Assembly: GCA_001938485.1 (NCBI GenBank)
Contig: MQRK01233770.1
Span: forward strand, 1-64,000
DNA from: Girardia tigrina
Lineage: Eukaryota
Length of the DNA: 64,000 nt
Reading direction: 5' to 3'
The translations under genes were made by a program, and so were the position numbers. The notes under the pieces were generated by a model, which made no database searches, was not told the DNA's origin, and saw only the letters and a list, made by a program, of their open reading frames with translations. Shown piece by piece: positions 810 to 30,075 of this stretch (positions within the stretch are counted from its first letter, which is position 1; the number at the start of each line of letters is the position of its first letter).

Positions 810-2282
810 TATATATATATATATATATATATACATTTGGGACCAGAAATATCCTCCGGCTTTCGCGAATATCCAGATTATACACATGCGGATTAGGCAT
901 TTGTACACTTATAAGACGAATTTTTATCTTAAAATTGTCATATACTCCGCTCACCATACATACAATAAAAACTTAGAACCCTTACCACTAGTGTAATTCT
1001 ACCTGCTTGATATTATTATTTATGATTTACTTTTTTATACTCTGAAAAAAAATGATCAATTTATTAAAAATTACTTTTTGTTATTATTTTACTTTAAAAA
1101 TTCAGTTCAATGTCGCTGCTTTTATTTAACCTTCGGTAATATTTCGGGACTCTTTAGGGTAACTGGAGTTGTAAGAGTCAGTATTTAATTAAGTTTGGAT
1201 CTTTATTCACCTTATCTGATTTTTTTCTGATTATCTGCACATTTTTCGTCTTGCATCTTCGAGTCCTTGGAACATCCTCTCTGTATAATGAATAAGTAAA
1301 TAGTTAATTATACATTTCAATTATTCCTTAAATTTATTTTTCCTAATTTTCTCATTATATTTTTCTTGCGACAGAATATTGTTATATCTCGTCTATTTCT
1401 TGATTATATTTTGTAACAACTAAACAAGATAAGTTTGTGAAAATATTCTTTTTAATTGGGAAATATTCTTTTAAATCAAAGAAAATTAACTTTGTAAAAA
1501 TATTGATAAAAATAGTATTTTTATTAAATTAAATTGTCGTTTTAGAAATATAAATAATATTCTTTTTGTACATCCATATATTTTAAAAAAAATATAATTT
1601 AGTTTAAGCTTTTTGATTGTTGAATATGTTTTAAAATATCATATTCCATCATCCAGAATTACAATTTAATTTTTAAAGTATTTGAATGATAGTTGTAAAT
1701 ACACAAAAATATATTTAAAATCTTCCATTAAGATATCATTGAATATTAATGACATTTTTTATTTAATTAATTACACTTTTCAAAAACGTGGTCAAAAAAT
1801 TGATTTTTATTTTATTTTATTTTTAAAAAAATCGACTTTCCACCTGAGATTTATAGTAATATTTTTTAATGTCTTTTACTCATAAGAATTAAGGAAAACA
1901 TCATTATTGATTTAGTTTGAATTTTACTATTCAAAAAAAAATAAAATCGAAAAACGGTTTTCTTTAAAATACTCGAAAACCGTTTGAGATAAATAGCAGA
2001 AAATTTGGCTGAATTATCTTTATTTAATGTCGAAACGGTTCACCAAATGCAAATCGAAAAACCCACGGGGGCAAATTTCTCTTTTAAACCCGGCTATACC
2101 ATTTAATCCGAAAATATAATTATTATTGTCTAAATGTTTGCCCATGGAGCACAAAGTATCACAACGTCTTGCAATCCCCAAATCAAAACCAGATAAAAAT
2201 TCCAAACGACAGTCATATTGAGTAATTTCAATATTTGAGTCAAAGTTTAAAATAAAAAATTTATTTTCGGTATCATTTTTTC

Positions 2283-4036: not shown

Positions 4037-4619
4037 AAAAAATGGAAAGAAAATTCATTTTCAAAAAAAATATAAAAAAATAAATTATGCTCCATTGCAC
4101 TAAAATAATCCATAGGAATAGTCATATTTTTCAGTCATAAAAGGGTTCTCCCTCCGTCTTATGTCTTCTACGTCTATCTGTATTTCTTTAATTGTTTCGT
4201 TATACTTTTATAATGTCAAAATATTTATTTGCTGTTGAAAAGCAATTATTATGGTCGAAACATGTACGATGATAATTTTTCAAAATATGCTTCGATATTA
4301 TCTATTCAAATAATATATCAATACATGACTCGAAAAAAATTATAAATTAATAAACCAAATCATTTCAATATGAAAATTGTGTGAACGAATATTTAAAATA
4401 AAATAATAATAATAAATAATTTTTTCCAATTAAAAACTAAGAAAATTGCATTAAATATATCTTAAATAAAAACTGAAACTATATTAATTGTTCGATAAGC
4501 TCTATGTAATCCTATTAATAAAAAATCAATTAATTTTCATTTTAATTTAATTTTTTAATTAGTAAAATCTTCAAAATTTTGTTTAACATGTATTTTAATT
4601 CATAATCAGTTTACTGCAG

Positions 4620-4941
4620 TCTGTACCATTATACGGTGGTGGGACAATCACGTTTGATACTCAAAAGCATAAGATAAATGATATTTCCTATGGACTGCAG
4701 CTTGATAAGGGAGACATCTGTTTGAGTTCAATTGCTAACAGTAAAGACTTTAATGCTCAAATTTATATGAAACTCTCTGAAAAAATGGAAATCGGAATAG
4801 AAAATGGTTGGAACCTCGACACAAAAAAATCGAAATTTGCAGGAGTCAGTCAATTAACATTGGAATCTGGATCTCAAATCAAGGCTAAAATAGAATCTTC
4901 GGGGATTTTATCCTTTGGTTATACGCTTGCAGTAAATGAAG
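4620..4941 (+). CDS. VDAC: Voltage-dependent anion channel (mitochondrial porin), penultimate exon
   Basis: Open frame SVPLYGGGTITFDTQKHKINDISYGLQL...DFNAQIYMKLSEKMEIGIENGW...SKFAGVSQLTLESGSQIKAKIESSGILSFGYTLAVNEG matches the VDAC C-terminal beta strands (F..[30 protein letters not shown]). Acceptor CAG at 4617-4619 (alternative AG at 4608-4609); GT donor at 4942. Confidence 0.88.
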
Positions 4942-5503
4942 GTCTTTATTTATTACCATGAAAGTATTTAAACTTTTTTTAAAAAAAATTGGAAAATATA
5001 AATTTTTGGAAATTGAGATATTAATAAACTCTATTCAATAAAGTCAAATTTATTTTTAGCCAACTTCAGGTTTTATTAACAACAATAGAGCTAACTTATT
5101 CATTGACGATTTGGAAATGACGTAGAGTAGAAGCTAATTAAAGGCTGTTAACAATGTGGAAGAGAGACTTATTTGGATATTAATTGATCAATTAATGTTA
5201 CTTAATTAAATATACCTCGCAAAAAACTCTTTCCCAATAATTTTTAAAATTATTACACAATATTTTAAAATAGGTTGAACTTATATAATACTGGAGTGAC
5301 TTCTCGTAATCTCTGAAAACGGATTAAGTAGCATAAGCCTTATTAATAAGATAAATTAATCCGAAAATTGATTTTAAAGTTCCATACGCAATCTCTCTGT
5401 TACAAATTTTCAAATAGAACTATAATGATCTACTTCGTTAAATAATGACGACTTATTATCATTATATATATATATATATATATGCTTCTAAAGGTGTTGT
5501 TAA

Positions 5504-5548
5504 TTTAGTCTGAAGATTGCGGACAATCCACCGAAATTAATTACTAAA
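5504..5548 (+). ncRNA. Minimal type I hammerhead ribozyme motif
   Basis: Stem I TTTAGT/ACTAAA, core CTGAAGA (5510-5516), partly decayed stem II, GAAA (5533-5536), palindromic stem III region AATTAATT, predicted AUU cleavage triplet. Confidence 0.7.
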
Positions 5549-5654
5549 ATAAATTTTAAAAAATAGTGTTCAATATTTTTTAATAATTTTAAATTTCCAT
5601 CGTTTTATTTAATTTATTATCTTCAATTTATAAGCCATTTCTTTTTAAAAATCA

Positions 5655-5697
5655 GTGGTCTGAAGATGACGTTTAAACCATCGAAATTAATAAACAA
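5655..5697 (+). ncRNA. Minimal type I hammerhead ribozyme motif (degenerate)
   Basis: CTGAAGA-TGACGTTTAAACCATC-GAAA-TTAA-TA; core intact but stems I and II imperfect; 150 nt downstream of the first motif. Confidence 0.55.
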
Positions 5698-6180
5698 AAC
5701 AAATGGATTGGCTTGTGAAATTTGATTTTAATAAGTTGCCAATATGTCTAAAATTTGTTTACAATATTTGAAATATATTATAGTTTAGGATTTGAATAAT
5801 AACTTAAATAAAACCAAAATTCATTGAATAAAATAAATTATTGTTTTTTAATATAATGTATATCGTGATTTATTGGCATAGCTTGTTCAATTCTTTATTA
5901 GGGCGATATTTCCCCCAAATCGTTAAGTAGATCCTTGATCTGGGTTGTTTTACTTTCACAGGGTCCCACAAATTCTACACTAAATTAAATGTAATTCTAA
6001 GCTACTGTTGTTTCTCATACTCTCTCTCCCATCTTTATTCGTACCAGCCAATGAACAGGTTATCAGTTAATAACAATAAAGTGATCACGAGGATCGGAAA
6101 AGTGAAGCGTTTTGATTAAGTTATAAGGGAAATATGTAATGTGGAATACGTCGATCTTCTTTATCTCCAAATACCTACAG

Positions 6181-6645
6181 CAGTGTTTTTCAACCTTTTC
6201 GGTAAAGCGGAACCCTATACAAATGACTACCTTGGTCGCGGAACCCTTATTCTATGTCACATAATAAACCTCATCGGTGAAAATGCAGCTTTTACGTTTA
6301 ATTGTACTATTTCTAAAATTTATGTCACATTTTCATTATTCATTATAAGCGTCACCAACAACAACTTATTAAAAGTTGCATAAAAATCCACAAATATCAA
6401 GGAATGTAAACATTAATTATAGTTACATATACATAGCAATAGTCAACAATTCAGTGTGAAATTTGTGCTTGATGATTTCTGTAGATAAGTTGAATTCTAT
6501 GCCGCGTTTTAGACAGACACACCTGAAATTCCTCTTCGACTGAAAGTAATCTTTCTCGCTTCTTGTATTTAATTGTTGTCAAACACGAAAATCCTAACTC
6601 ACATAAGTAAGAAGTTGAAAATTGAACCAACAGAGGTTCCGCCAA
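6181..6645 (-). mobile_element. hAT Buster/Charlie 3' end fragment
   Basis: TIR CAGTGTTTTTCAACCTTTT at 6181; near-identical reverse complement of about 12050-12501; encodes C-terminal FSTSYLCELGFS...QAQISH; flank ACCTACAG fits the NNNTANNN target. Confidence 0.9.
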
Positions 6646-6913
6646 AAATATTTAAAATTTTAGAATTTACTGACACAAAATCCAGAATATTGATTTTATG
6701 GGGGTATGAATCATTCTTTAATCAGTTACTTAGTTATATATATATATATAATCGCATATTGGGTTCTTGATCAAAAGACGTTGTCATTAACACAAAACTT
6801 TATTTCTAATACAACTTTCATTATTCAAACAAATTTATGAGAAACAATATTTCAGTTACATAAACCACATTTTAAAATTCTAAATATAAATAATATTGAT
6901 GTATATATATATA

Positions 6914-7017
6914 CAGTAGCGCTCAAAAATAACCGGACGAAGTGAAAATTGGCTATATCTCTTGAATGGTATTAAATATATTAATGAAATTTTGCCAAAA
7001 TGTGTAGCTTAACAGTT
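6914..7017. mobile_element. Tc1-like element terminus cut by an assembly gap
   Basis: TA|CAGTAGCGCTCAAAAATAA, similar to the terminus at 59750 (CAGTATCGCTCAAAATGA). Confidence 0.5.
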
Positions 7018-7119
7018 NNNNNNNNNNNNNNNNNNNNNNNNNNNNNNNNNNNNNNNNNNNNNNNNNNAAGATGTTTGCATAATCATCAATTTGCTATATA
7101 TAAGACAGCGAAATTGTTG

Positions 7120-7170
7120 TTTATTCAGCCTGAAGATGGTGGAAAATCCACCGAAATATATTGCAATAAA
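7120..7170 (+). ncRNA. Minimal type I hammerhead ribozyme motif
   Basis: Stem I TTTATT(CA)GC / GCAATAAA, CTGAAGA (7130-7136), perfect stem II GGTGG-AAAAT-CCACC, GAAA (7153-7156), palindromic AATATATT, AUU triplet. Confidence 0.8.
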
Positions 7171-7237
7171 ATTTGATTTTAATGGCTTTCTTAATTATAA
7201 AATTTTGCCATTATTTTTTAAATTTCTTATTAAGATT

Positions 7238-7296
<59 letters not shown>

Positions 7297-9676
7297 TTAT
7301 TTATAGCGGGAAAAGTGCTCAACTCACAACATCATGAGTTTCCCAAATAGCACTTAAAGAAAGAACAAACAGGTAAAGATAAGAGTCAATGAGAATTTGT
7401 TATTTTATGAAATAATGTTGAGTTGTATAAAATATAAATAATGGTTGTATAAAATATAAATCAGGAAGTAATTTAAGGTAATGATGTTTAAATATTGTAA
7501 TTTTAAAATTACTACTATGAAATAATTAAACTCAGAAAGGGAGAAAGGGCAAGGAGTCTAGCTCAATCGCAATGCTAGTCTCCAAGAAAAAGAAACGATA
7601 AAGAAATAAATATAACAAATAACCAATTATTGTTCGCCTTTAAAATACGGAACAGTTCATTGGATTCAACGAGGTAAACTCGCTACTAATTGGGTAGTCC
7701 TTAATAATATCTGGTAATCGAGAGGGATAAGAATTGACCTTATTAGGTCTTGGATTTTGCGAGACGATATTATTTAAACAATACATTCCAGAAGATGTTC
7801 CTGAAAAATTGAAAATAATTTCGGAAAAGTCACTTTGAATTGCGGTTAGCTATTCCAAACAAAAACTTTTGAAATTCCTGGAAGCTAAAAGAATAAGATA
7901 AAACTAATAATATATCCACGCATTTCTTGTTGTATTTTCAATTTGTGCGAACGTTTCACGATAATTATCTTTTGTCTTTAAGATAATATTTATTTCTGTT
8001 GATTTTTTATCGATTTTTTAATAATATTTTTATTTTGTACTTTTTATTTATAAAATAAATAAAAAATAAATACATATACAAATACATATTCACAGGCATA
8101 TATAAACTAAAAAATTATAATAATAAATAATAATAATATATAAATAAAAATATTTGAAATTAAAATAGATAAACATATAATTGTTCGTTGTAGTGGAACA
8201 CAACATTACTTAATACATACGCTAAATTCATTGAAAATCGATTGTTGATTGAGAGTACATGCAGATTATTTTAAACAGGTATTTTACCAATTTATAATAA
8301 AAAAGTAAATAAAACAATGTTCTGAAAAGTATAAAATATTTTTATTAGTTTATAGCTTTTTAAAAGTTTTGGTTCAACATGTTGCACATAGCGAAGTTTT
8401 ATCCCTTAATGTCACATCTTTCGTTTCTCAACACATACAAGTATAAAAAAGAATTAGACAAGCACACAAGTCAGTGCATTTTCTAAAAGTTTCAGAAAGT
8501 ACCTAGCTGCAGCAATCCAAAAGTCTATAAATCTATAAGTTATTTCAGGAATTGAAAATTTTAATTAACTCATCCTAATATTTACATATCATTTACTGAA
8601 TTTATTTATTTAAATTAAAATAAAAATTTGGATAATTAAAACTTTTAATTAATTTTTATTAAATTTTAGGTTATTGAAATCACATTTCTTGATTAAGAGT
8701 AAAAAAATAAGCCCTTAATTTGTTAAGCAATTTTCAGGGAAGCAATGCAGCAAAAAGTTTTTCAATACATAGAAATTGTTAAAAAAAATATTCACTGTTA
8801 CTTTTTTTTAATTAAAAATATATATTTTTCTTAATTTAAAACTAATTTCTTTATCATTTTAATCTTCTTTCAAAAATGCCAAAAAATATGGAATTAAATA
8901 AAAATTTGCACAAAAAATTCCGGCTACCTTTTTTCAAGATTTGAACAGTGTTTCATTTTTTAAAGAAAATAAAAGAATATATATAATTTCCGTAAAATTA
9001 AACGGAGAAATTTATTTTTAATATAGAAAAAGGTTTTATTAAAAAATTATTTTTATCCAATTAAAACTAAATAAAATTGTTTTAAATTTAATAAGATTTA
9101 CTACTTGTTTTTTTTAAATGACGGTCTTTTCCAAAGCTAATAATTATAATTTTTAAATTCTGTATTATTTATAACAAAATAAGAATATACTTTAGATGTA
9201 TCGATTTTTGTTTTAATCATCAAATCTCTAGAGTTTCTGAATTTCTGAAAGATAGACTTAAATTATTTTTTTTCAATTTAAATATTTCTTTACCGCGAGA
9301 CGTTTTATTTTTTTTATAACTTGTTAAAATAATGAAGAAATTGTAGAACATAAATCTTTCTTCAGAATTTATTTTTAAAAAATTAATATCTTTCTCATAT
9401 TTATGTTTATTTGATTATAATTTTAAATTATTTTATTAAAAAAACAACTATTTTCCTTTAGTTTGAATCAATTTTTTCTCATATTTGTTTAAATCAATAA
9501 ATCGTCTATTTTTTACTTGGAAAATAACTGGCAACTATATTCTTCTTAAAGCTGAAATTCAACAAAAATATGTTCAAATTATTATGCTAATAAATTATAT
9601 ATATTATCTAGAATTGATAATGGCATTTTTAATAATAATGAAAAGAAAGGCCATTTTTGAATATTAAATTTATTCA

Positions 9677-9719
9677 CAATACAAACGCGTTTCACCATTT
9701 CGGCATCTTCAGTGCAATG
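9677..9719 (-). ncRNA. Minimal type I hammerhead ribozyme motif (inverted pLTR copy)
   Basis: Reverse complement reads CATTGCA-CTGAAGA-TGCCGAAATGGT-GAAA-CGCG-TT-TGTATTG. Confidence 0.75.
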
Positions 9720-10143
9720 AAATAAAGAGATTAATTAATATTTATATATATTAATATTTATATAATTAATATTTATAAAGGTAATAATCCTTTCATAATT
9801 TGTGTCAAAATTATTTAAAATCACTTTAAAATCTTTATTGTAATCCATAAGATTACCTTTACATCTTTTATCTTAATCTTATGGATTAAAATAAAGATTT
9901 TAAAGTGATTTTAAATAATTTTGACACAAATTATGAAAGGATTATTACCGAAGCATTGTTAATAAAGCATCATAAATCATGCTTAAACGTGCAAGGTGAT
10001 TCATCTAATCATATTAAAGTTTTTTAAATATTTTTAAATATCATTAAAATACTTTTCTTTTTTTTAAAGAAAAAAAAACATGTTTTTGAGACGTATGATG
10101 TAATAGTTTTCAACTATATAAATAGTATTTAATCACTTTATTT

Positions 10144-10186
10144 CATTGCACTGAAGATGCCGAAATGGTGAAACGCGTATGTATTG
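10144..10186 (+). ncRNA. Minimal type I hammerhead ribozyme motif
   Basis: CATTGCA-CTGAAGA-TGCCGAAATGGT-GAAA-CGCG-TA-TGTATTG: stem I pairs, palindromic ACGCGT stem III, GUA triplet ending at 10179. Confidence 0.8.
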
Positions 10187-10225
10187 CTAATAAATTTAAT
10201 ATTCAAAAATGGCCTTTCTTTTCAT

Positions 10226-10289
<64 letters not shown>

Positions 10290-10382
10290 TAATCAAAACA
10301 TTTGTTTTATTGATTCAAATAATATATTTCTTTTTATTTTCATTTAAACTTATTTATTATATTTATTTTGTAAATTACCATT

Positions 10383-12501
10383 TTGATCGCGAACATGGAC
10401 CGATTTATTAAAAAGCGTAAATTGGAAGACGCCGTAACATCCGACGATACTAAGTTTCCGGAGCCGAACACTACATCCACTCAACTGCAGTTGCCGAAAA
10501 ATGACGCTGGCAATCCGCGGGTCAAAGTCCGCCAGTACTATGATAACTATATAGCTCTGGGGTTCACTTGGATGGGTGACCCAGACTGTCCTTTACCACT
10601 GTTTGTTGTTTGTGGAGTAAAACTTGCCAATAGTGCCATGGTGCCAGCTAAACTTAAGCGGCACTTTACAAGTAGACATCCGGAGGTACCGAAAAAAACG
10701 AACAGTACTTCCAGAGAACATTATCGTTGAATAAGAAGCAAATGGCTACGTTTGAGAAAAGATTTAAGATAAATGACAAAGCTCAAGAAGCAAGTTATGC
10801 TGTAACGGAGATGGTTGCTAAAAAAATTAAGTCGCATACCGTCGCTGAAAGGGTAATTTTACCTGCATTCCAAGAAATTGTGAGGATTATGTTTGGAGAG
10901 GATACCGTATCAGAAATCAATAAGATTCCGCTTTCATATAACATCATAAGTGCAGACATGTCCAGCGACATTGAGCGCAATGTTCTCTCAAAAATTAAAA
11001 GCCGAGAGTTTGTTGCAATCCAGATATACGAGAGCACAGACATTAGTGGCAAAGCACAGCTGATTGCGTTTGTTCGCTTTATTGACAAATAAGCTATCAT
11101 AGAAGACTTTCTTTGCTACAAGGAATTGCCGGAAACAACAAATGGACAAGATATTTATGATATCTTAAATTCGTATTTGCAATCTTGCGAATTGACTTGG
11201 GAAAACTGTGTAGACATTTGTACAGATGGTGCACCTACTATGACAGGAAATGTCAAAGGCTTTGCTTCACTGGCCTAACGACAAAGTCCCAATATTATAG
11301 TCATTCATTGTTTTCTTCATAGAGAAGCATGGGTTGCTAAAACAATTGGACCTGAGTTGAAGTCTGTATTGGACATGGTGGTGAAAATAGTAAATTACAT
11401 GAAGACGAGACCATTGAAATGTCGTCAGTTTGCGAAATTATGCGAAACTATGGAAGCTTACCACGTTACTTTTATTCAGTATACAGACGTACGATGGTTG
11501 TCTCGAGGGAATGTTTTGTGTCGTTTCTACGAACTTAGAGAAGGGATGCTAATCTTCTGTTCTCAAGGGTACATGACGGACTTTGCAGAAGCTTTGAGTG
11601 ATAAATTATGATGTTTCAGGTTAACATATTTGGTTGACATCTTTCACGAATTAAACTTATTGAACAGTAGCATGCAAGGTAGGAATGAAAATATATTGAC
11701 GTCAGCAGACAAAATAAGTGCTTTTTCAGAAGAAAAATAACTATATGGAAGAAACGTGCTACTACAGGGAATGTAGTAATGTTTCTCAGTATCGTTGAAA
11801 GAAACTGTCAGGACAGTCTGCCATTGATTTTAAATCACTTGGACATACTATTGGCAGGTCTCAATTAATATTTTCCGTCCATATCCTTAAACCGGTACGA
11901 CTTGGTTCGAAACCCATTCATTGAATTTGAACCATCCGAAGAACAGTTCACCTTATCAGAAGAGGTACAACTCGCTGGCTAAACTTGGATGCCTTATTGA
12001 TGCTGGTTGAAAAGAAGTATACATCAATTGCTCAGAAAGCCCTGTGATTGTTGGTTCAATTTTAAACTTCTTACTTATGTGAGTTAGGATTTTCGTGTTT
12101 GACCACAATTAAATACAAGAAGCGAGAAAGATTACTTTCAGTCGAAGAGGAACTTCGGGTGTGTCTGTCTAAAACGCGGCCTAGAATTCAACTTATCTGC
12201 AGAAATCATCAAGCACAAATTTCACACTGAATTGTTGACTACTACCTATGTATATGTAACTATAATTAATGTTTACATTCCTTGATATTTGTGGATTTTT
12301 ATGCAACTTTTAATAAGTTGTTGTTGGTGACGCTTATAATGAATAATTAAAATGTGACATAAATTTTAGAAATACTACAATTAAACATAAAAGCTGCATT
12401 TTCACCGATGAGGTTTATTATGTGACATAGAATAATGGTTCTGCGACCAAGGTAGTCATTTGGTTAGGGTTCCGCTTTACCGAAAAGGTTGAAAAACACT
12501 G
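10383..12501 (+). mobile_element. hAT Buster/Charlie transposon with a disrupted transposase (ZBED5/SCAND3-like)
   Basis: MDRFIKKRK start, BED-finger region (P.C.VC...L.N.AM.PAKLKRH), ESTDISG, CTDGAP, HCFLHRE, VRWLSRG and LCELGFS motifs with stops and frameshifts; 3' TIR ends at 12501; 5' TIR not seen. Confidence 0.93.
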
Positions 12502-15495
12502 TCCTAAACCTCCTATGCCTTCTTTGGCTTATAGGTAATGGAAATAATAGATCGTTATTAACAAAATCAACGACTGTGATACTTTTGATCTATGTGTAAG
12601 ACCGTATGAATATTAATTTAATTCCTTAAAATGGATAATAAATTATATAATATATTTAATTAATATTTTTGTTTTAATGAATATTTCATTCAATACGTTT
12701 ATTCGCTTTACAAGAGAAAGGAATTTGTACTGTTTTATTCATTTAAAATATTTGTCTAAAATTAAGATTAATAAAACATAAAAGCCACAACTGATTCAAA
12801 TTTAACAAAAAAAGTTACAAGATTTTTTAATAATTTTATAATTATTTATATAAAATTGAAATTATATTTCATGATAATTATATTATAAAAAATTTTAAAA
12901 AGCATCTGTTCAAATGAAAATAATTTATTATTATTTTTTTGCTATATTTAATTATATTATTTGAAAATTTTACATTCAAACAAAAATTCTTTATTTTATA
13001 TATGTTAAAAATAAAATATAAAAAATGAAGAATATTAAAATTATTAAATATTGAATTTTATATTTTTAATTTTAATTAAATTTTAACCGATTTCTTTGTT
13101 GATTTATATGAAAAAATGACTTTGTCAAACAATAATAAATCCGTTCATGTGTTAATAAATTTTGATTGTTTTTTTTATTAAATTCTCTGATAGAAAGAAA
13201 CATCTGAAAAAAAAAATTTATATTAATTTTTTTTCTAAAAATTAAATGAAAAAAAATAGGAATTTACTTCAACAAAGGTTGTTTTGTTTTATTTCTAGAA
13301 ATCACTTCAAAAAGAAAAGGAATTTCATTAATTTTCATGAAAATGTAATTATTTTCAATTTTATTTGGATGAAAATTTATTTAATTTTTTATTTTAATTA
13401 AAAAAAATTCTTTTCGATTTCTTAGAAAATCAAATTTACTGCTGCCAAAGAATTGAAGAGAAAAAAGGTCTTGAACTCTGTTTTCTTTAACTTAGATTTT
13501 TGTAGGTTAAGGTTGAATAATTTTGTTATTAAGGGTTTTGTAGTACAGGGTCCTTTTACACTAAGGGTCCCCTTGTACTCTAAATAAAATTTAATTTGAC
13601 ACCAAATGATTGCTTGGGACCAGTACTGTTTCGGGAGATCTTTGATCCGCCATCACCAAACAGTTGGCCCAAGCCACTCATGTAAATAACAATAAATGCA
13701 ATTGGAGAAATTCAATAATTGTATATATAATTAATTATAACTAAAATTAAAATTAAAGAATTATATATTTATAAAAAAAAAATTAACTGTTATAAAAAAA
13801 GGAAAATTATTGCAAAAAATTNNNNNNNNNNNNNNNNNNNNNNNNNNNNNNNNNNNNNNNNNNNNNNNNNNNNNNNNNNNNNNNNNNNNNNNNNNNNNNN
13901 NNNNNNNNNNNNNNNNNNNNNNNNNNNNNNNNNNNNNNNNNNNNNNNNNNNNNNNNNNNNNNNNNNNNNNNNNNNNNNNNNNNNNNNNNNNNNNNNNNNN
14001 NNNNNNNNNNNNNNNNNNNNNNNNNNNNNNNNNNNNNNNNNNNNNNNNNNNNNNNNNNNNNNNNNNNNNNNNNNNNNNNNNNNNNNNNNNNNNNNNNNNN
14101 NNNNNNNNNNNNNNNNNNNNNNNNNNNNNNNNNNNNNNNNNNNNNNNNNNNNNNNNNNNNNNNNNNNNNNNNNNNNNNNNNNNNNNNNNNNNNNNNNNNN
14201 NNNNNNNNNNNNNNNNNNNNNNNNNNNNNNNNNNNNNNNNNNNNNNNNNNNNNNNNNNNNNNNNNNNNNNNNNNNNNNNNNNNNNNNNNNNNNNNNNNNN
14301 NNNNNNNNNNNNNNNNNNNNNNNNNNNNNNNNNNNNNNNNNNNNNNNNNNNNNNNNNNNNNNNNNNNNNNNNNNNNNNNNNNNNNNNNNNNNNNNNNNNN
14401 NNNNNNNNNNNNNNNNNNNNNNNNNNNNNNNNNNNNNNNNNNNNNNNNNNNNNNNNNNNNNNNNNNNNNNNNNNNNNNNNATACGGTCCTCTTAAGGACC
14501 ACAATTGACGATTGGGAACTCGAATTTTGGACCGCATCCTCATGGGCCCGGATGCTGGTGATTAACCAAAGTAATTTTCTAGTAAATAATTTTCCAGCAA
14601 TATTAAATAAACTAATTATGTTACTGCATAACAGAACCATCTCGATGTGGGCTATGCAGATTGATCTCAACTTTGCACGGATTCCCTCCCTGTTCCTCTA
14701 CTATTTCGCATTTTATCAGCATATATATGATCATAGTAAAATTTGAGCTTGACCGAAAAAGCATTATTCCGATTATAACAAAATTTTGCAAATTTATACT
14801 TAATTGATTTTTAGAAATATAATTAATAAATAAGTTACGGAAATCGTCATTTATGGATTGAATGTTATTAGTATTTTTAAAACTTTCTCACGAAATTCAT
14901 TGTAGGAATTGTCAAAATCGTCACAATTCGAAATTTTTTTTAACAACTTAACGACCTGCACGGTTTTCGGTCGAATTTTTCGGCTTCCCAGCGTCTTTCT
15001 CCAAAGGCACTGTACCGCTAGAACCGTTTCGATGTGGGCTATCTAGAATGGCCACGCCTTGAGTGGATTCATTCCAGTTCCTCCAAAATTTTACATTTCA
15101 TAGCGTGACCCACAAACAAACAAATTAACATCGTTTTTAGACAAATATACTACATAATTTGTTTTTATTCCAGTTATTGACATAAAAATAGTTCACAGAT
15201 AGACTTACATAGATCAATCTATTAGCTCGTTTTTACTGGTTCTTTGACAACTTAATTGACTTTAAGCAATTTAAATTAAATAAAAATACTGTTTCTTTTG
15301 TATTTTATCGATTTCACGTGATTTGAAATATAAGGGAATAACTGCATCCTCAAGAATTTGTAGCTTTTTCTATGGATCATCTTTCTGATGACATCCTTAC
15401 TTCGTAACTTTCCATAAACTTGAAGAACATTATCAAGAATTTCAATTAATACTTCTATTGTTTCATAGCCTTTAGTAGATGAAGATCCCACTCAT

Positions 15496-15944
15496 TATTA
15501 ACAACATCACAATTTGAATGCAAAAATTTATTTACAACACAAACAGATTCTTCACAACAATTTTCAGAGGTCATCTTTCTTTGATTGATATAGTTTTTGA
15601 TTAAATATTCAAATATGAAAAAATCAATGAATGGGAAATTTTAATATTACATTTTAATTTCTCATAATTTTATTTGATAAAAAGACATTATGTAATTTTT
15701 TAAATAAACATTGATTTTTAAAATATATTAAATTTAATAAGTTAAAATCATTTACTGAAAATATTAATAAAATTTATAATTATCAAACTTTAATTAATTA
15801 GTACTTTAATTTAATATCATTAAATTAATTTCATTAGATTCAAATAATTAATCAATAACATATCAATCCCATCTGAGTAGGAGAGTCACCAATCTAAACA
15901 GCATACAAACAACAAACTTACAACATTCCAAATTATCCCTCACA
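15496..15944. mobile_element. Solo LTR-like element, family 2 (5-bp TSD)
   Basis: Reverse strand reads TGTGAGGG...TGTTAATA; TSD CTCAT at 15491-15495 and 15945-15949; shares the CCATCTG..TAGGAGAG..C.CAATC...CATACAA motif with the element at 26251-26831. Confidence 0.65.
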
Positions 15945-16522
15945 CTCATTATTATGTTAATTTAGAGATTTGACATTTATCATGTTACCCTTTCAATTAT
16001 CCTCATCAAAACTTTGTAACACCATCAGAATTTTGTTTATCAAAACGTGTAGATATTTCTTTTCTGGAAGTTTTTTTATTTTCTTTATTCGATAATAATA
16101 ATTGATTCTCCATGTTCATAATGAAAGCAAAATAAATTTATAAATACTTTTTCATTAAATATTAAAAATTTGCGAATTTTTTGCAATATTAAAACATTGA
16201 TAACGAAAGAGATAACATTTAAAGTGGTGATGGTCTTAGTATGGCTTCCAACATTTCTATTATTATCACAATTCTAATTGCATTTAGGATAACTCTTAAC
16301 AAACTTTTGATAAGATTTTTTAATGAATTGTTTTAAAATTAAAACAAAGATTTCCATTTTATACAATTAAATTAATTTTATGGTTTCATGATTATTTTAT
16401 TCATTTTTTAAAAAAAAATAATATATTAATAGACAGAGTAATTAAAAAAGAATGCAAGAAAGTCATTGCATTATATTTAAAAAACAATGGCTACTTGTGG
16501 AACACAAATGTTGTATTTAACT

Positions 16523-17050
16523 TTAAATCTTTATCATGCTTAACAAGTGTTCAATATGATCATCATTGGAAGCGCGGACAACAAAGCGATATGAAAATTC
16601 CTTCCAAACGCGCTTCAGAATGTCCCTGACCACTTTTGATTGCAGTTGTTAATCGATCATCTTTCATGACATTGAAATTTTCTGGTAATGGTGGAATAAG
16701 AACTTTGTCTTTAACATAATCCAACAGGAAAAGGTCAAACACAGTAAATTATCTAACCCACTATCGGATGCTTGCACGGTGGGGTAGATCGATGCCATAT
16801 TCTGTTTTAAGCAATAGTACTTTTTTGCAAAGTCAAGCATACAAGCGCTTTTCGTTGAGGATTCATCATTCTGATGGTAAATAAACAAGGACCCTCTTAA
16901 TCCAGTATAAATCCAGTATCAAAATGACCATTAATTCAGTTAATTGCAATGCTTTCTTATTGAATAAATGAGAGATGATTTTGGTCCATTCTTGTATTGT
17001 ATGGCAAAAAAGATTATACTGAAAAAATGATCTTCATTATAAAACTTTCT
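16523..17050 (-). mobile_element. Tc1/mariner-superfamily transposase remnant (DUF4817-type C-terminus)
   Basis: Frameshifted translation gives DYVKDKVLIPPLPEN...LKRVWKEFSYRF...HIEHLL, typical of this transposase group. Confidence 0.7.
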
Positions 17051-17407
17051 TGATCGAAATAATAACTTCATCCAATATTTTACATAAAAATTTATTTCAA
17101 TGATTTTTTTACAAACTTTTATTTAATTGGTTTTAAAAATTTAATTTAAACTTTTAACTTTAACAAAATTTATAATTTAATTCTTATAATTTTAAAATTT
17201 TTACATATCTAATGTAGCAATTTAAAGTGTAAATCATGCTCAAACAATTACTCATCACGAACATCACAAATACTAATTTTCCATCCGCATTTCCAAATAA
17301 CAAATTCAACATACCAAATTTATAATATTCCCCACAATAATCATTATTAAAGTTTATTTAGTAAAATTATTTGAAAACTTTTATTATTAATTTATTTTGT
17401 AAGGATA

Positions 17408-18651
17408 TTAGGGTGAACCAAAGGTCTTTTCGTATTTTTTATTAAAAATTTAAACATAATTTTACAACAAATAAAAAACATTTAAGTTTCAAAGTAAAGG
17501 CCATTTGAATCTATAGCTTGAACTCATCTATGGGCAAGTTGTGCGATCCCGCTGCGGTACCAATCCTTGTTCTTATAAGCGAAGAACTGGTGACACCCGT
17601 TTTCGACCTCGGCCAGATTATTGAAGCTGCGACCACGAAGAAAGTGTGACATAGAGCGGAAAAGGTGATAGTCGAATGGCGCAAGATCCGGACTATACGC
17701 TGGGTGTGGAAGAAGTTCAAAGGCGTCGAGATTTTTGATTTTTTTCTGTTGTAGAAGAACTCGCTTTCGATTGATCAAAGCGGGGTATTTCTCGCCAAGT
17801 GCGCATACATTCGATCAAGTTGGGCGCAGTAAAGGTCAGCGTCGGTGGTACGACCATTTGGAACCAGCTCAAAGTGAATCACGCCTCCGAAATTCCACCA
17901 AACACACAAAAGTGCCTTCCTTGAGAAACGATCTCGTTTCGCTACCGGTTTCACCATTTGTCCGGGGTCCAACCATTGATTTTGTTGGTCTGGATTACAG
18001 AAGTAAACCCACTTTTCATCGCAAGTTACAATTTGACGGTTGAAACGATCATCGCGCGGATTTTCAAGCAATTTTTGACAAGTTTCGAAACGCTTTTTGG
18101 CTTGAATTTGTGTCAATTCATGAGGCACTTCTCTACATCGTCTATTGACCTTGCCAAGAGCGTGAAGGTGTCGTACAATGGATGTTTGAAGAATATCGAG
18201 TTCAGCCGACAATCTGCAAGTACTTATTGACGAATTTGTCTCGACGGCTTCACGAATTGCTCCGGAATCTACGGTGATAGGTCGGCCTGAACATGCATTG
18301 TCTCCGAGGTCAATGTCGCCTTCGTTGAACCTTTTGAACCAATTTTGTGCAGTACGATTTGAGACCACATTATCGCCTTCAACTTCGCATATCTTCTTTG
18401 TTGCTGCAGTTGCGTTTAAGCCCTCTTTTCAGTAATGGCGTAAAAGAACAGGAATTTCAAAAGTTTTCTAAAAGACCATAAAAATTATATTAACGACTAA
18501 TTAGAAGTTTTAATATATATTAGATGTGATAGAGCAGTTCAAGAGCTTTAAAAACATATAACACATGTATATAAAATATCTTTATTTGGTAATAAGAAAC
18601 AATTGAACAAAAAGACGTAGAAAATACGAAAATACTTTTGGTTCACCCTAA
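17408..18651 (-). mobile_element. Full-length mariner element with a disrupted DD34D transposase
   Basis: TIRs TTAGGGTGAACCAAAGGTCTTTTCGTATTTT / AAAATACGAAAATACTTTTGGTTCACCCTAA, TA TSDs, 1244 bp; motifs VPHELT, TCDEKW and YSPDLAPFDY; frameshifts. Confidence 0.95.
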
Positions 18652-18961
18652 TATTTTTGAGATAAATATTGATAAGTTTTTTTAAGCAATTAATTTTAAT
18701 ATAGGAATAATAATAATAAAGTAATAATAATCATCAAAATCATTTTTAAATTAAAAGATTTCATTTATGTTTTAATAAACGGACATGAAATAATTATTCC
18801 CTAATGGGTTTTCCCAATTTTATTTCTTTAATCAGTTTTAATAACATTTTCTAAATATTATACTTATATTTTTGTCGAAATTTCTTTTGAAAAAACATTT
18901 AATATTTTATTATTTATAAAAATTATAGTAATAAAATATTTAATATGAATTTTATATTTAG

Positions 18962-19047
18962 GCATTAAAGCAACACTTGGGATGAAATTGAATGGCAAGA
19001 ATCTCACGAGCGGGGGTCACGAATATGGGCTTGAAATAGAATTTTGA
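18962..19047 (+). CDS. VDAC: VDAC last exon
   Basis: TTTAG acceptor ending at 18961; G(4941)+GC completes a Gly codon; GIKATLGMKLNGKNLTSGGHEYGLEIEF* matches the VDAC C-terminus GIKLTLSALLDGKN.NAGGHKLGLGLEF. Confidence 0.93.
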
Positions 19048-29856: not shown

Positions 29857-30075
29857 TTGATTGAAAAGAAGCAGAATAGATTCATGACAGGGGTCTACAG
29901 AAAACCAAAGGACACTGGTCTTTACAGTACTCTGAGTAGTTTCAGTGACCCAAAATATAATAAAAATATGATTAAGGGTCTAGTGCATAGAGTTTGGAGT
30001 TTAACTTCTTCTTTTGAAATTTTTGATAAAGAAATTGATACTCTTCATAACAGACTTAGTATTAATAATAATTAA
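29857..30075 (+). mobile_element. Penelope-like reverse transcriptase fragment (thumb region)
   Basis: TGVYRKPKDTGLY...S.PKY.KNMIKGLVHR.....S..F..EI..L...L..N is the characteristic PLE RT C-terminal pattern. Confidence 0.85.

Follow-up and report, generated by a model that had tools for sequence, protein, structure and literature searches.

Five hammerhead-like motifs are found in the last intron of a VDAC (eukaryotic porin) gene of Girardia tigrina, and as a whole they are very probably debris from the 3′ hammerhead regions of Penelope-like retrotransposons (PLEs) in an intron that is normally spliced. The motifs would represent 3′-terminal hammerhead-like modules ('min-HHRs') from four PLE families. 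At least four separate insertions of 5′-truncated copies probably brought them into the intron, at or beside (TA)n microsatellites and beside one another; one of these insertions would be an inverted pair in the head-to-head arrangement that PLEs typically show. As parts of the VDAC pre-mRNA the motifs are probably passengers that display little or no self-cleavage. Whatever the nature of a motif's action, it would belong to the PLE's own RNA and not to VDAC. The window referred to below is the whole stretch of DNA that was analysed, 64 kb in length.

A preliminary description, made from the letters of the DNA, reported five CUGAAGA...GAAA motifs, and all five are present (Table 1). The core C3-U4-G5-A6-N7-G8-A9, G12-A13-A14 with a non-G H17 is complete in each: CUGAAGA, GAAA and the A15.1-U16.1 closing pair are found throughout, and H17 is U, A, U, A and U in m1 to m5, respectively. 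The pattern CTGAAGA-N8-22-CGAAAT has three matches in the window vs 0.05 expected. The loose core CTGANGA-N6-24-GAAA has seven vs 2.97 expected, which is weakly significant by itself. With filters off, a covariance model finds exactly the five motifs in the 64 kb (48-60 bits; the next match has 18.9 bits, E 0.19), these being its own matches by construction, as the model was made from the five motifs and related copies. This search agrees with the earlier statement that no comparable motif is present elsewhere in the window, bar one: a sixth, dead remnant, CTGAAGT at 5069-5063 on the minus strand, where a 24-nt deletion took away cut site and GAAA box alike. A covariance scan with type I hammerhead models, proposed as a check in the same description, did not succeed, in that the Rfam hammerhead models find none of the five, either at gathering score in the window or, for positions 5000-10700, with relaxed filters and a limit of E<=10. 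The Rfam matches obtained are spurious miRNA and lncRNA hits in AT-rich DNA.

Table 1. Hammerhead-like motifs, VDAC gene parts and PLE fragments in the window (a slash marks the predicted cut)
Feature	Position	Strand	Detail or basis
Motif m1	5504-5548	+	core from 5510; predicted cut 5542/5543
Motif m2	5655-5697	+	core from 5660; predicted cut 5692/5693
Motif m3	7120-7170	+	core from 7130; predicted cut 7162/7163
Motif m4	10144-10186	+	core from 10151; predicted cut 10179/10180
Motif m5	9719-9677	-	core from 9712; predicted cut 9684/9683
VDAC penultimate coding exon	4610-4941	+	Pfam Porin_3, transcript contigs, splice sites
Last VDAC intron, about 14 kb	4942-18961	+	transcript contigs; compatible splice phase
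Last VDAC coding exon incl. stop codon	18962-19047	+	paralogue comparison; acceptor tttag/GC
Old PLE family-A-like 3′ fragment with dead hammerhead remnant	4990-5277	-	76-83% identity to GIY-YIG-coding ends of natural copies
Family A′ PLE fragment, strongly 5′-truncated, carries m1	5484-5615 (ends approximate)	+	78% identity to family A 3′ end
Family C PLE fragment, 5′-truncated, carries m2	5616-5693	+	L066 and L083, about 82% identical from -46 to +34/+35
Assembly gap hiding 5′ end of m3's parent copy	7018-7067		flanks are different repeats
PLE family A 3′ end with m3, intact family-standard min-HHR	7068-7239	+	97.7% identity, 172 nt, natural copy L093
Family B PLE copy, 5′-truncated, internal deletion, carries m5	9635-9870	-	BLAST to L038 and L047: 9870-9780, 9748-9635
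Family B PLE copy, 5′-truncated, carries m4	9874-10268	+	L038, 397 nt at 91.9% identity

The location of the motifs in a VDAC intron, and of the two exons on one transcript, had been proposed before; both are confirmed by spliced transcript contigs that join exon 4610-4941 to exon 18962-19047. Motifs m1-m4 are sense within this contig-confirmed intron, as was also claimed. The penultimate exon displays a Porin_3 domain (Pfam, 52.7 bits, profile positions 135-253) and is bordered by an acceptor AG at 4608-4609 and a donor GAAG/gt. The VDAC gene has both the domain and its two exons on one spliced transcript. Contig coverage spans 4610-4942 and goes on with the opening letters of the 18962 exon (three runs, one sample); in an X3 contig the letters past 4942 are the start of that exon. 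These RNA data are assembled contigs, informative on splicing and not on RNA ends or strand. The last exon translates to IKATLGMKLNGKNLTSGGHEYGLEIEF*, which matches the C-terminus of a paralogue, and it was through paralogue comparison that the exon was found, a simple-motif search for it having had no success. VDAC exons upstream of 4610 lie outside the window, except for unplaced contig letters before 4610. The intron contains two assembly gaps, at 7018-7067 and 13822-14480, and a series of open reading frames at 10383-11611 that has no Pfam match, even at E<=10.

Each of the five motifs, like every aligned family sequence, has an extra unpaired U between A9 and 10.1 (invariant column T18). 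A palindrome of 6 nt with no loop makes up helix III: AUUAAU in m1 and m2, AUAUAU in m3 and ACGCGU in m4 and m5. It is not a closed hairpin, and pairing is possible between two copies only. In an 11-sequence cross-family alignment 100% of helix III cells are paired/palindromic, with two covarying pairs. Helix II varies: m1 has U.C at 10.1-11.1 plus a C.A mismatch; m2 has a G-C opening pair, but one internal mismatch and one lost pair when compared with the intact sequence of its family; in m3 the helix comprises 6 bp, with G-C, and in m4 and m5 it is 4 bp long with G.U as the closing pair. Helix I consists of 6 bp in m1, 2-3 in m2, 2 in m3 and 6 of 7 in m4 and m5.

Among 76 distinct copies the 10.1-11.1 pair is G-C in 49, G.U in 24 and another combination in three; helix II is 97.3% paired, and five of its six pairs have changed on both sides. 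The two core-proximal pairs of helix I are kept in 67/76 and 69/75 distinct copies, with several pair types, and the distal pairs are mostly unpaired. Overall pairing in the 76 copies amounts to 75% of cells vs 56.5% in shuffled sequences (0/500 reach it) and 33-46% in slid controls, and in the 11-sequence set to 81% vs 59%; all covariation figures are inflated, as these sets are related copies, partly structure-selected or model-fitted.

Minimum-energy folding of monomers and homodimers never recovered the hammerhead fold as the minimum. For m1 to m5 that fold has -2.1, +5.3, -8.0, -2.6 and -2.8 kcal/mol vs minima of -6.7, -6.8, -10.6, -5.1 and -5.4. Predicted dimers pair via UUCAG/CUGAA stretches; the double-hammerhead topology is not scorable as a nested structure. 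Motifs m4 and m5 lie in an inverted repeat (I1, 114 nt, 95%) that is predicted to form a 114-bp hairpin. Over 681 nt (-294.5 kcal/mol), 42 of the 43 nt of m4 are predicted to be paired with the antisense m5 arm, which argues against the earlier suggestion that m4 could cut the pre-mRNA.

Each motif resides in a PLE fragment (Table 1). The m1 fragment directly follows (TA)n at 5463-5483, and the likeness of the m2 fragment to family C copies ends 2-3 nt or less from the predicted cut site. Motif m3 is an exact family A core with an 87-nt tail beyond the cut site, and its fragment ends at (TA)n, 7236-7305. The left flank of the 7018-7067 gap is a repeat unrelated to the PLE on the right flank, and none of the transcript contigs listed bridges the gap; m3 is 62 nt clear of it, and the m2-m3 spacing spans it and is hence nominal. 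The family B copy at 9874-10268 ends in (TA)n and stands head-to-head with the antisense copy at 9635-9870. Inverted '- then +' pairs have been published for PLEs (PMC4209133, PMC8557442) and are frequent in the genome lists. A 150-nt unit bounded by (TA)n was considered and rejected; the 'TATATA' upstream of m3 is element sequence.

The motifs are not chance matches, each being a copy of a high-copy repeat family. Within three mismatches the genome contains 4,913 copies of family A, 2,653 of family B, 8,093 of family C and 225 of family A′, about 15,900 in 1.43 Gb, and reversed-pattern controls give 0 copies. To our knowledge, these particular PLE families have not been described previously. 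With such numbers, the cluster in the VDAC intron is ordinary for this genome, and the special character implied for it earlier is not upheld. Five motifs in 4.7 kb nevertheless greatly exceed the genome-wide average, about 11 per Mb, and so dense a group would be compatible with a local cause beyond PLE target preference.

In natural copies of families A and B the motif is situated 70-130 nt downstream of a GIY-YIG open reading frame. The stop is about 70 nt before the motif in the family A copies L091 and L093 (GIY-YIG, 23.7 bits, cut-off 22.6); the family B copy L047 has 30.7 bits, and a family C copy retains an endonuclease C-terminal remnant. The family A copies also have an RT-like piece further upstream (weak RVT_1, 13.1 bits). 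All protein tests were on natural copies. A motif with an upstream GIY-YIG frame, together with the RT-like piece, is the layout of the 3′ end or pLTR of PLEs, and the Penelope-like origin put forward in the preliminary description is supported by the families and by both coding remnants.

The 5′ ends of copies are variable; the 3′ ends lie downstream of the cut, by 0-90 nt in family A and by 15-110 nt in family B. Boundaries in family A were located with a majority-rule profile that covers its terminal ~1.1 kb. Most copies extend 20-90 nt beyond the cut site, and ends at the cut site itself, the footprint that cleaved templates would leave, are without enrichment: by ungapped X-drop extension three of 59 family A tails measure 0-4 nt, near the neighbouring bins, and one of the three is an indel variant. 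Local alignment is unsuited to this test, as AT-rich flanks lengthen the alignments.

It might be asked whether the motif is a working ribozyme at all, or whether the PLE 3′ region has in it a module for structure or protein binding that merely retains hammerhead-like boxes. The silence of the Rfam hammerhead models, a helix I down to two conserved pairs and the distribution of genomic 3′ ends, most of them 20-90 nt past the cut, are compatible with such a module; copies that run past the cut site imply templates that were uncut. In the Anolis PLE, moreover, insertion in vitro is unaffected by hammerhead mutants, yet the motif of that element is able to cleave in vitro, an activity lost on mutation of C3/G8 (PMC11167929). 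Across the four families the boxes, the G at 10.1, A15.1-U16.1, non-G 17 and the palindromic helix III are kept while the helix sequences differ, and these features are exactly what catalysis requires. A module without a working ribozyme is therefore unlikely. Whether a ribozyme would act on the host transcript is a separate matter. Sense motifs that cut a share of the VDAC pre-mRNA co-transcriptionally, and so tune its output, are suggested by four motifs on the pre-mRNA strand of a confirmed intron, by complete catalytic boxes and by the exact family-standard m3; the same RNA runs also hold PLE-derived transcripts with the same helix III palindrome, and pairing in trans is possible in principle. 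Correctly spliced VDAC contigs nevertheless exist. In published work min-HHR monomers lack activity and dimers have little of it, and RNA-seq ends at the cut site were not found in the one PLE studied (PMC4209133, PMC11167929). The PLE-related HHR repeats known as tandem non-LTR retrozymes are depleted from Xenopus introns, and this speaks against a host function (bioRxiv 10.64898/2026.07.22.740005). The motifs themselves look like passengers because helix II is mutated in m1 and m2, m3 is alone, needs a dimer partner and, like its family, has a helix I of 2 bp only, m4 is predicted to be locked in a hairpin with the m5 arm, and m5 is antisense to the gene. Regulation of VDAC by cleavage is very unlikely on this evidence.

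Three contigs leave their match to the window within 1 nt of predicted cuts, at 7162 (X3), 7161 (X5) and 5693 (X5), out of 24 of 196 loose ends that were listed. These breakpoints could hint at processing, and subfamily differences explain them equally well. Solitary intronic min-HHRs such as m3 might be cut in vivo when their helix III pairs in trans with transcripts from PLEs of their own family, and the breakpoints at 7161/7162 (in two organisms) and 5693 would then be footprints; contigs matching the family of m3 in the same RNA runs do have a high summed depth. This variant is rated slightly lower still, as highly improbable. Lowest of all stands the proposal, made in the preliminary description, that a retrozyme-like unit (5543-5692) is set free between m1 and m2 and forms a circle. 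The two motifs share one orientation, a distance of 150 nt and the palindrome AUUAAU. They derive, however, from different PLE families, A′ and C, and the 'units' are similar in a 47-nt core only. TRF detects no 150-nt repeat or tandem array in positions 5300-6000, helix II is defective in both motifs, the hammerhead fold of m2 has a positive energy, and contig depth at m1-m2 is low (3-29). In the non-LTR retrozymes described in the literature a single unit with canonical type I hammerheads is repeated in tandem (PMC7229834), and m1-m2 shows no such array of two or more hammerhead-bearing units of 170-400 nt. Such a unit has almost negligible probability.

Debris of PLE 3′ ends is thus the preferred reading. 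Hammerhead motifs of this kind were already known as a large repeated fraction of invertebrate genomes, and four hammerhead-bearing PLE families, which account for about 16,000 copies of the motif, now join them. The locus represents one intron in which several motifs are piled up and splicing is not stopped. It also offers a caution for genome scans: in a PLE-rich genome a clean hammerhead core in a housekeeping intron is expected transposition debris and not a regulatory device. Should locus-specific cleavage occur after all, it would provide a simple route from transposon activity to lower host gene output; should cutting take place in trans, transposon bursts would nick host pre-mRNAs that carry sense fragments, VDAC included.

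The motifs closely resemble the PLE min-HHRs of Cervera and de la Pena (2014, PMC4209133), which have no activity as monomers and weak activity as dimers in vitro. Common to both are the CUGANGA and GAAA boxes, a single nucleotide left unpaired between A9 and 10.1, a helix II that at family level is long, covaries and starts at G10.1, a helix III that is palindromic and has no loop, and a helix I of few pairs. In both, copies number in the thousands, stem from truncated elements and mostly stand alone; pairs on opposite strands at distances of 100-700 bp and an adjoining GIY-YIG endonuclease frame (with the RT-like piece in family A) are also shared. Differences are that helix II of family B is closed by G.U and not G-C, and that helix I of family A has 2 bp. 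With canonical EN+ PLEs (Penelope/Poseidon/Neptune; PMC8557442, PMC11167929) the elements have in common a C-terminal GIY-YIG, heavy 5′ truncation, inverted head-to-head copies, a 'tail' past the ribozyme, microsatellite insertion and frequent breaks in short-read assemblies; the 3′ ends of family A, however, are spread 0-90 nt past the cut, in place of a single tail of 30-40 bp. Metazoan non-LTR retrozymes (PMC7229834; bioRxiv 10.64898/2026.07.22.740005) display the same type I topology, link to PLEs and A + T richness, but they consist of a single tandem unit of 170-400 nt with canonical hammerheads (loop-loop contacts) and circRNAs, whereas m1 and m2 belong to adjoining fragments of two PLE families. 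Amniote intronic hammerheads, as far as they are presented in PMC7229834 (refs 22 and 25 therein), likewise place a sense hammerhead inside an intron of a protein-coding gene; by that account they are single, complete, ultraconserved and detected by Rfam models, in contrast to the recent multi-copy transposon fragments of the VDAC intron.

The five hammerhead-like motifs are ordinary transposon debris of a kind known since 2014. The motif is real and was rightly recognised in the preliminary description: all five copies claimed there (m1 to m5) were found again in place. They share a layout in which the 5′ strand of helix I is followed by CUGAAGA, one extra U, a helix II hairpin and GAAA; 3′ of GAAA come a 4-nt self-complementary stretch between A15.1 and U16.1, H17 and the 3′ strand of helix I. 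CTGAAGA-N8-22-CGAAAT has 3 matches against 0.05 expected, and bare hammerhead cores are weakly over-represented (7 against 2.97 expected). A strict descriptor of the minimal hammerhead motif of Penelope-like element (PLE) terminal repeats (min-HHR) is passed by m3, m4 and m5; m1 and m2 fail because of a break in helix II that lies at its closing pair or close to it. An Rfam scan has no hammerhead match at the gathering score or at E≤10. At the family level the motifs show every published hallmark of the PLE min-HHR. They fall outside the Rfam definition of type I: they do not score, and helix III does not form within one molecule.

PLE insertions in the VDAC intron, with their hammerhead motifs and predicted cut sites
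Feature	Position	Strand	Motif	Predicted cut site	Remarks
Old family-A-like fragment	4990-5277	-			hammerhead destroyed by a 24-nt deletion
A′ fragment	about 5484-5615	+	m1	5542/5543	immediately 3′ of (TA)n
C fragment	5616-5693	+	m2	5692/5693	homology ends at most 2-3 nt from cut site
A fragment	7068-7239	+	m3	7162/7163	(TA)n at its end
B copy	9870-9635	-	m5	9684/9683	internally deleted; half of head-to-head B pair
B copy	9874-10268	+	m4	10179/10180	other half of head-to-head B pair; (TA)n at its end

Helix sequences diverge between families, and pairing is retained. Helix II occurs as GGUGGA/UCCACC, GGCGGA/UCCGCC, GACGG/CCGUC, GAUGU/ACAUC, and GCC/GGC or GCC/GGU, and helix III as AUAUAU, AUUAAU, ACGCGU or ACAUGU. 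Paired cells make up 81% of an 11-sequence cross-family alignment (59% when shuffled, 30-45% in slid controls), and among 76 distinct copies, which are model matches in 222 kb of genome loci, pairing in helix II reaches 97.3%, 5 of its 6 pairs show compensatory change, and helix I retains only its two core-proximal pairs; both sets consist of related copies, partly structure-selected or model-fitted, and the figures are therefore generous. Helix I, which had no role in the selection of copies, covaries at its first two pairs.

Counted over the whole 1.43 Gb genome at ≤3 mismatches to the core, with reversed-pattern controls at 0, there are 4,913 copies of family A (m3 core), 2,653 of B (m4/m5 core), 8,093 of C (core of an intact relative of m2) and 225 of A′ (m1 core). 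The 5′ ends vary among copies, and 3′ ends past the cut site are scattered over 0-90 nt in family A and 15-110 nt in family B. Natural family A copies display an open reading frame that stops ∼70 nt upstream of the motif and contains a GIY-YIG domain above the Pfam cut-off, with a weak RT-like piece farther upstream. Family B copies carry a distinct GIY-YIG frame (30.7 bits), and the conserved endonuclease C-terminus persists in a family C copy. Upstream GIY-YIG frames and 5′-variable multi-copy families are the anatomy of canonical endonuclease-bearing PLEs, and the Penelope-like origin put forward earlier is borne out. A mariner-like transposase frame adjoins the PLE copy at one natural locus (L091).

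The host gene is also as described. The exon at 4610-4941 codes for the part of the eukaryotic porin domain from position 135 to 253, and comparison with a paralogue places the missing C-terminus at 18962-19047, with a proper acceptor and a fitting splice phase. In three runs of a single sample, contigs 880-1026 nt long cover 4610-4942; past 4942 the contig of run X3, the one whose continuation is listed, has the letters that open the exon at 18962. The run label 'RNA' is only a guess, but the spliced junction demonstrates a transcript origin. Both VDAC exons are thus on one transcript, the intron is 4942-18961, and the claimed context of four sense motifs in a VDAC intron is correct. Elsewhere in the genome 16-21 separate porin-domain exon matches are spread over many contigs; those with identical scores are possibly haplotigs or paralogues. 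On contig C234464 (L006) a C-terminal coding piece (1843-1959) lies directly after the exon at 1503-1841 (reverse complement), so the 14-kb intron is seemingly absent from that copy. One 379-nt contig (L005, C7049:1-379) codes for the C-terminal end of a porin domain (profile positions 216-261). It is GC-rich, unlike the rest of the AT-rich genome, and contamination or a processed copy may account for it.

The min-HHRs would have reached this intron inside 5′-truncated PLE insertions, in at least five events. Four motifs are sense and two antisense, one of these dead, with no orientation bias visible at this intron. An antisense PLE coding remnant lies at 5134-5277. To the right of the assembly gap (7018-7067), 7068-7239 shares 97.7% identity with the 3′ terminus of a natural copy of an element; the left flank is from another repeat, and none of the contigs listed bridges the gap. 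The 5′ end of the m3 parent copy is therefore in or beyond it. As the stretch is non-coding, the gap affects no reading frame. Repeats of very high summed contig depth (6600-7017, 5200-5400) adjoin motifs, and 6760-6913 resembles unrelated repeat pieces at two other loci (L042, L085). Four or five frame-shifted frames at 10383-11611 (+; 115, 121, 50, 45 and 84 amino acids) read like a decayed transposase-type gene; Pfam has no match to them even at E≤10. Outside the VDAC gene, a further family-B-like PLE coding fragment (29938-30057, -; 76% identity to L047) has no hammerhead motif nearby.

The motifs probably do not cut VDAC pre-mRNA, or barely do so, as predicted from pairing defects, folds, published min-HHRs and copy ends. 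In helix II, m1 has U.C at 10.1-11.1 and a C.A mismatch, and m2 has lost two pairs relative to its family. Motif m3 is intact but solitary, with a helix I of 2 bp and a helix III that consists of A and U alone and depends on a partner. The hammerhead is the minimum-energy fold in none of the five. For m4, folding of 681 nt (-294.5 kcal/mol) predicts a 114-bp stem in which the antisense arm of m5 pairs with 42 of the 43 nt of m4. The min-HHRs described in the literature show no activity as monomers and little as dimers, and the sole biochemically studied PLE inserts without need for cleavage and has no RNA-seq ends at the cut site (PMC4209133, PMC11167929). The majority of genomic copies extend well beyond the cut site, and their templates were thus uncut. 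A function for VDAC lacks support and is unlikely.

Among the loose contig ends listed (24 of 196), the window match of at least three contigs stops within 1 nt of predicted cut sites: at 7162 (X3; 1,979 nt, depth 1,331) and at 7161 and 5693 (both from run X5). RNA ends cannot be read from assembled contigs, and beyond these stops the contigs, from two differently labelled organisms, run into unrelated sequence. Chimerism between subfamilies, boundaries of elements or processing may lie behind the stops; differences among subfamilies would be enough to explain them. The suggestion that m1 and m2 bound a retrozyme-like unit fails: their families differ, the two do not make up a repeat unit, and contig depth there is low. 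Within 9590-10270, the head-to-head pair together with a 76-nt perfect inner palindrome (9780-9855 with 9874-9949) is predicted to fold the intron RNA into a hairpin of ∼300 bp, which could plausibly supply double-stranded RNA directed against elements of family B; contig differences of the A>G and T>C kinds there are inseparable from copy variation.

Known PLE insertions display heavy 5′ truncation, microsatellite bias and an added tail, often with an inverted truncated copy joined head-to-head, and their terminal repeat bears a hammerhead motif (PMC8557442, PMC4209133, PMC11167929). The families in the window are like canonical PLEs in their 5′ truncation, head-to-head pair, (TA)n neighbours and hammerhead motif.
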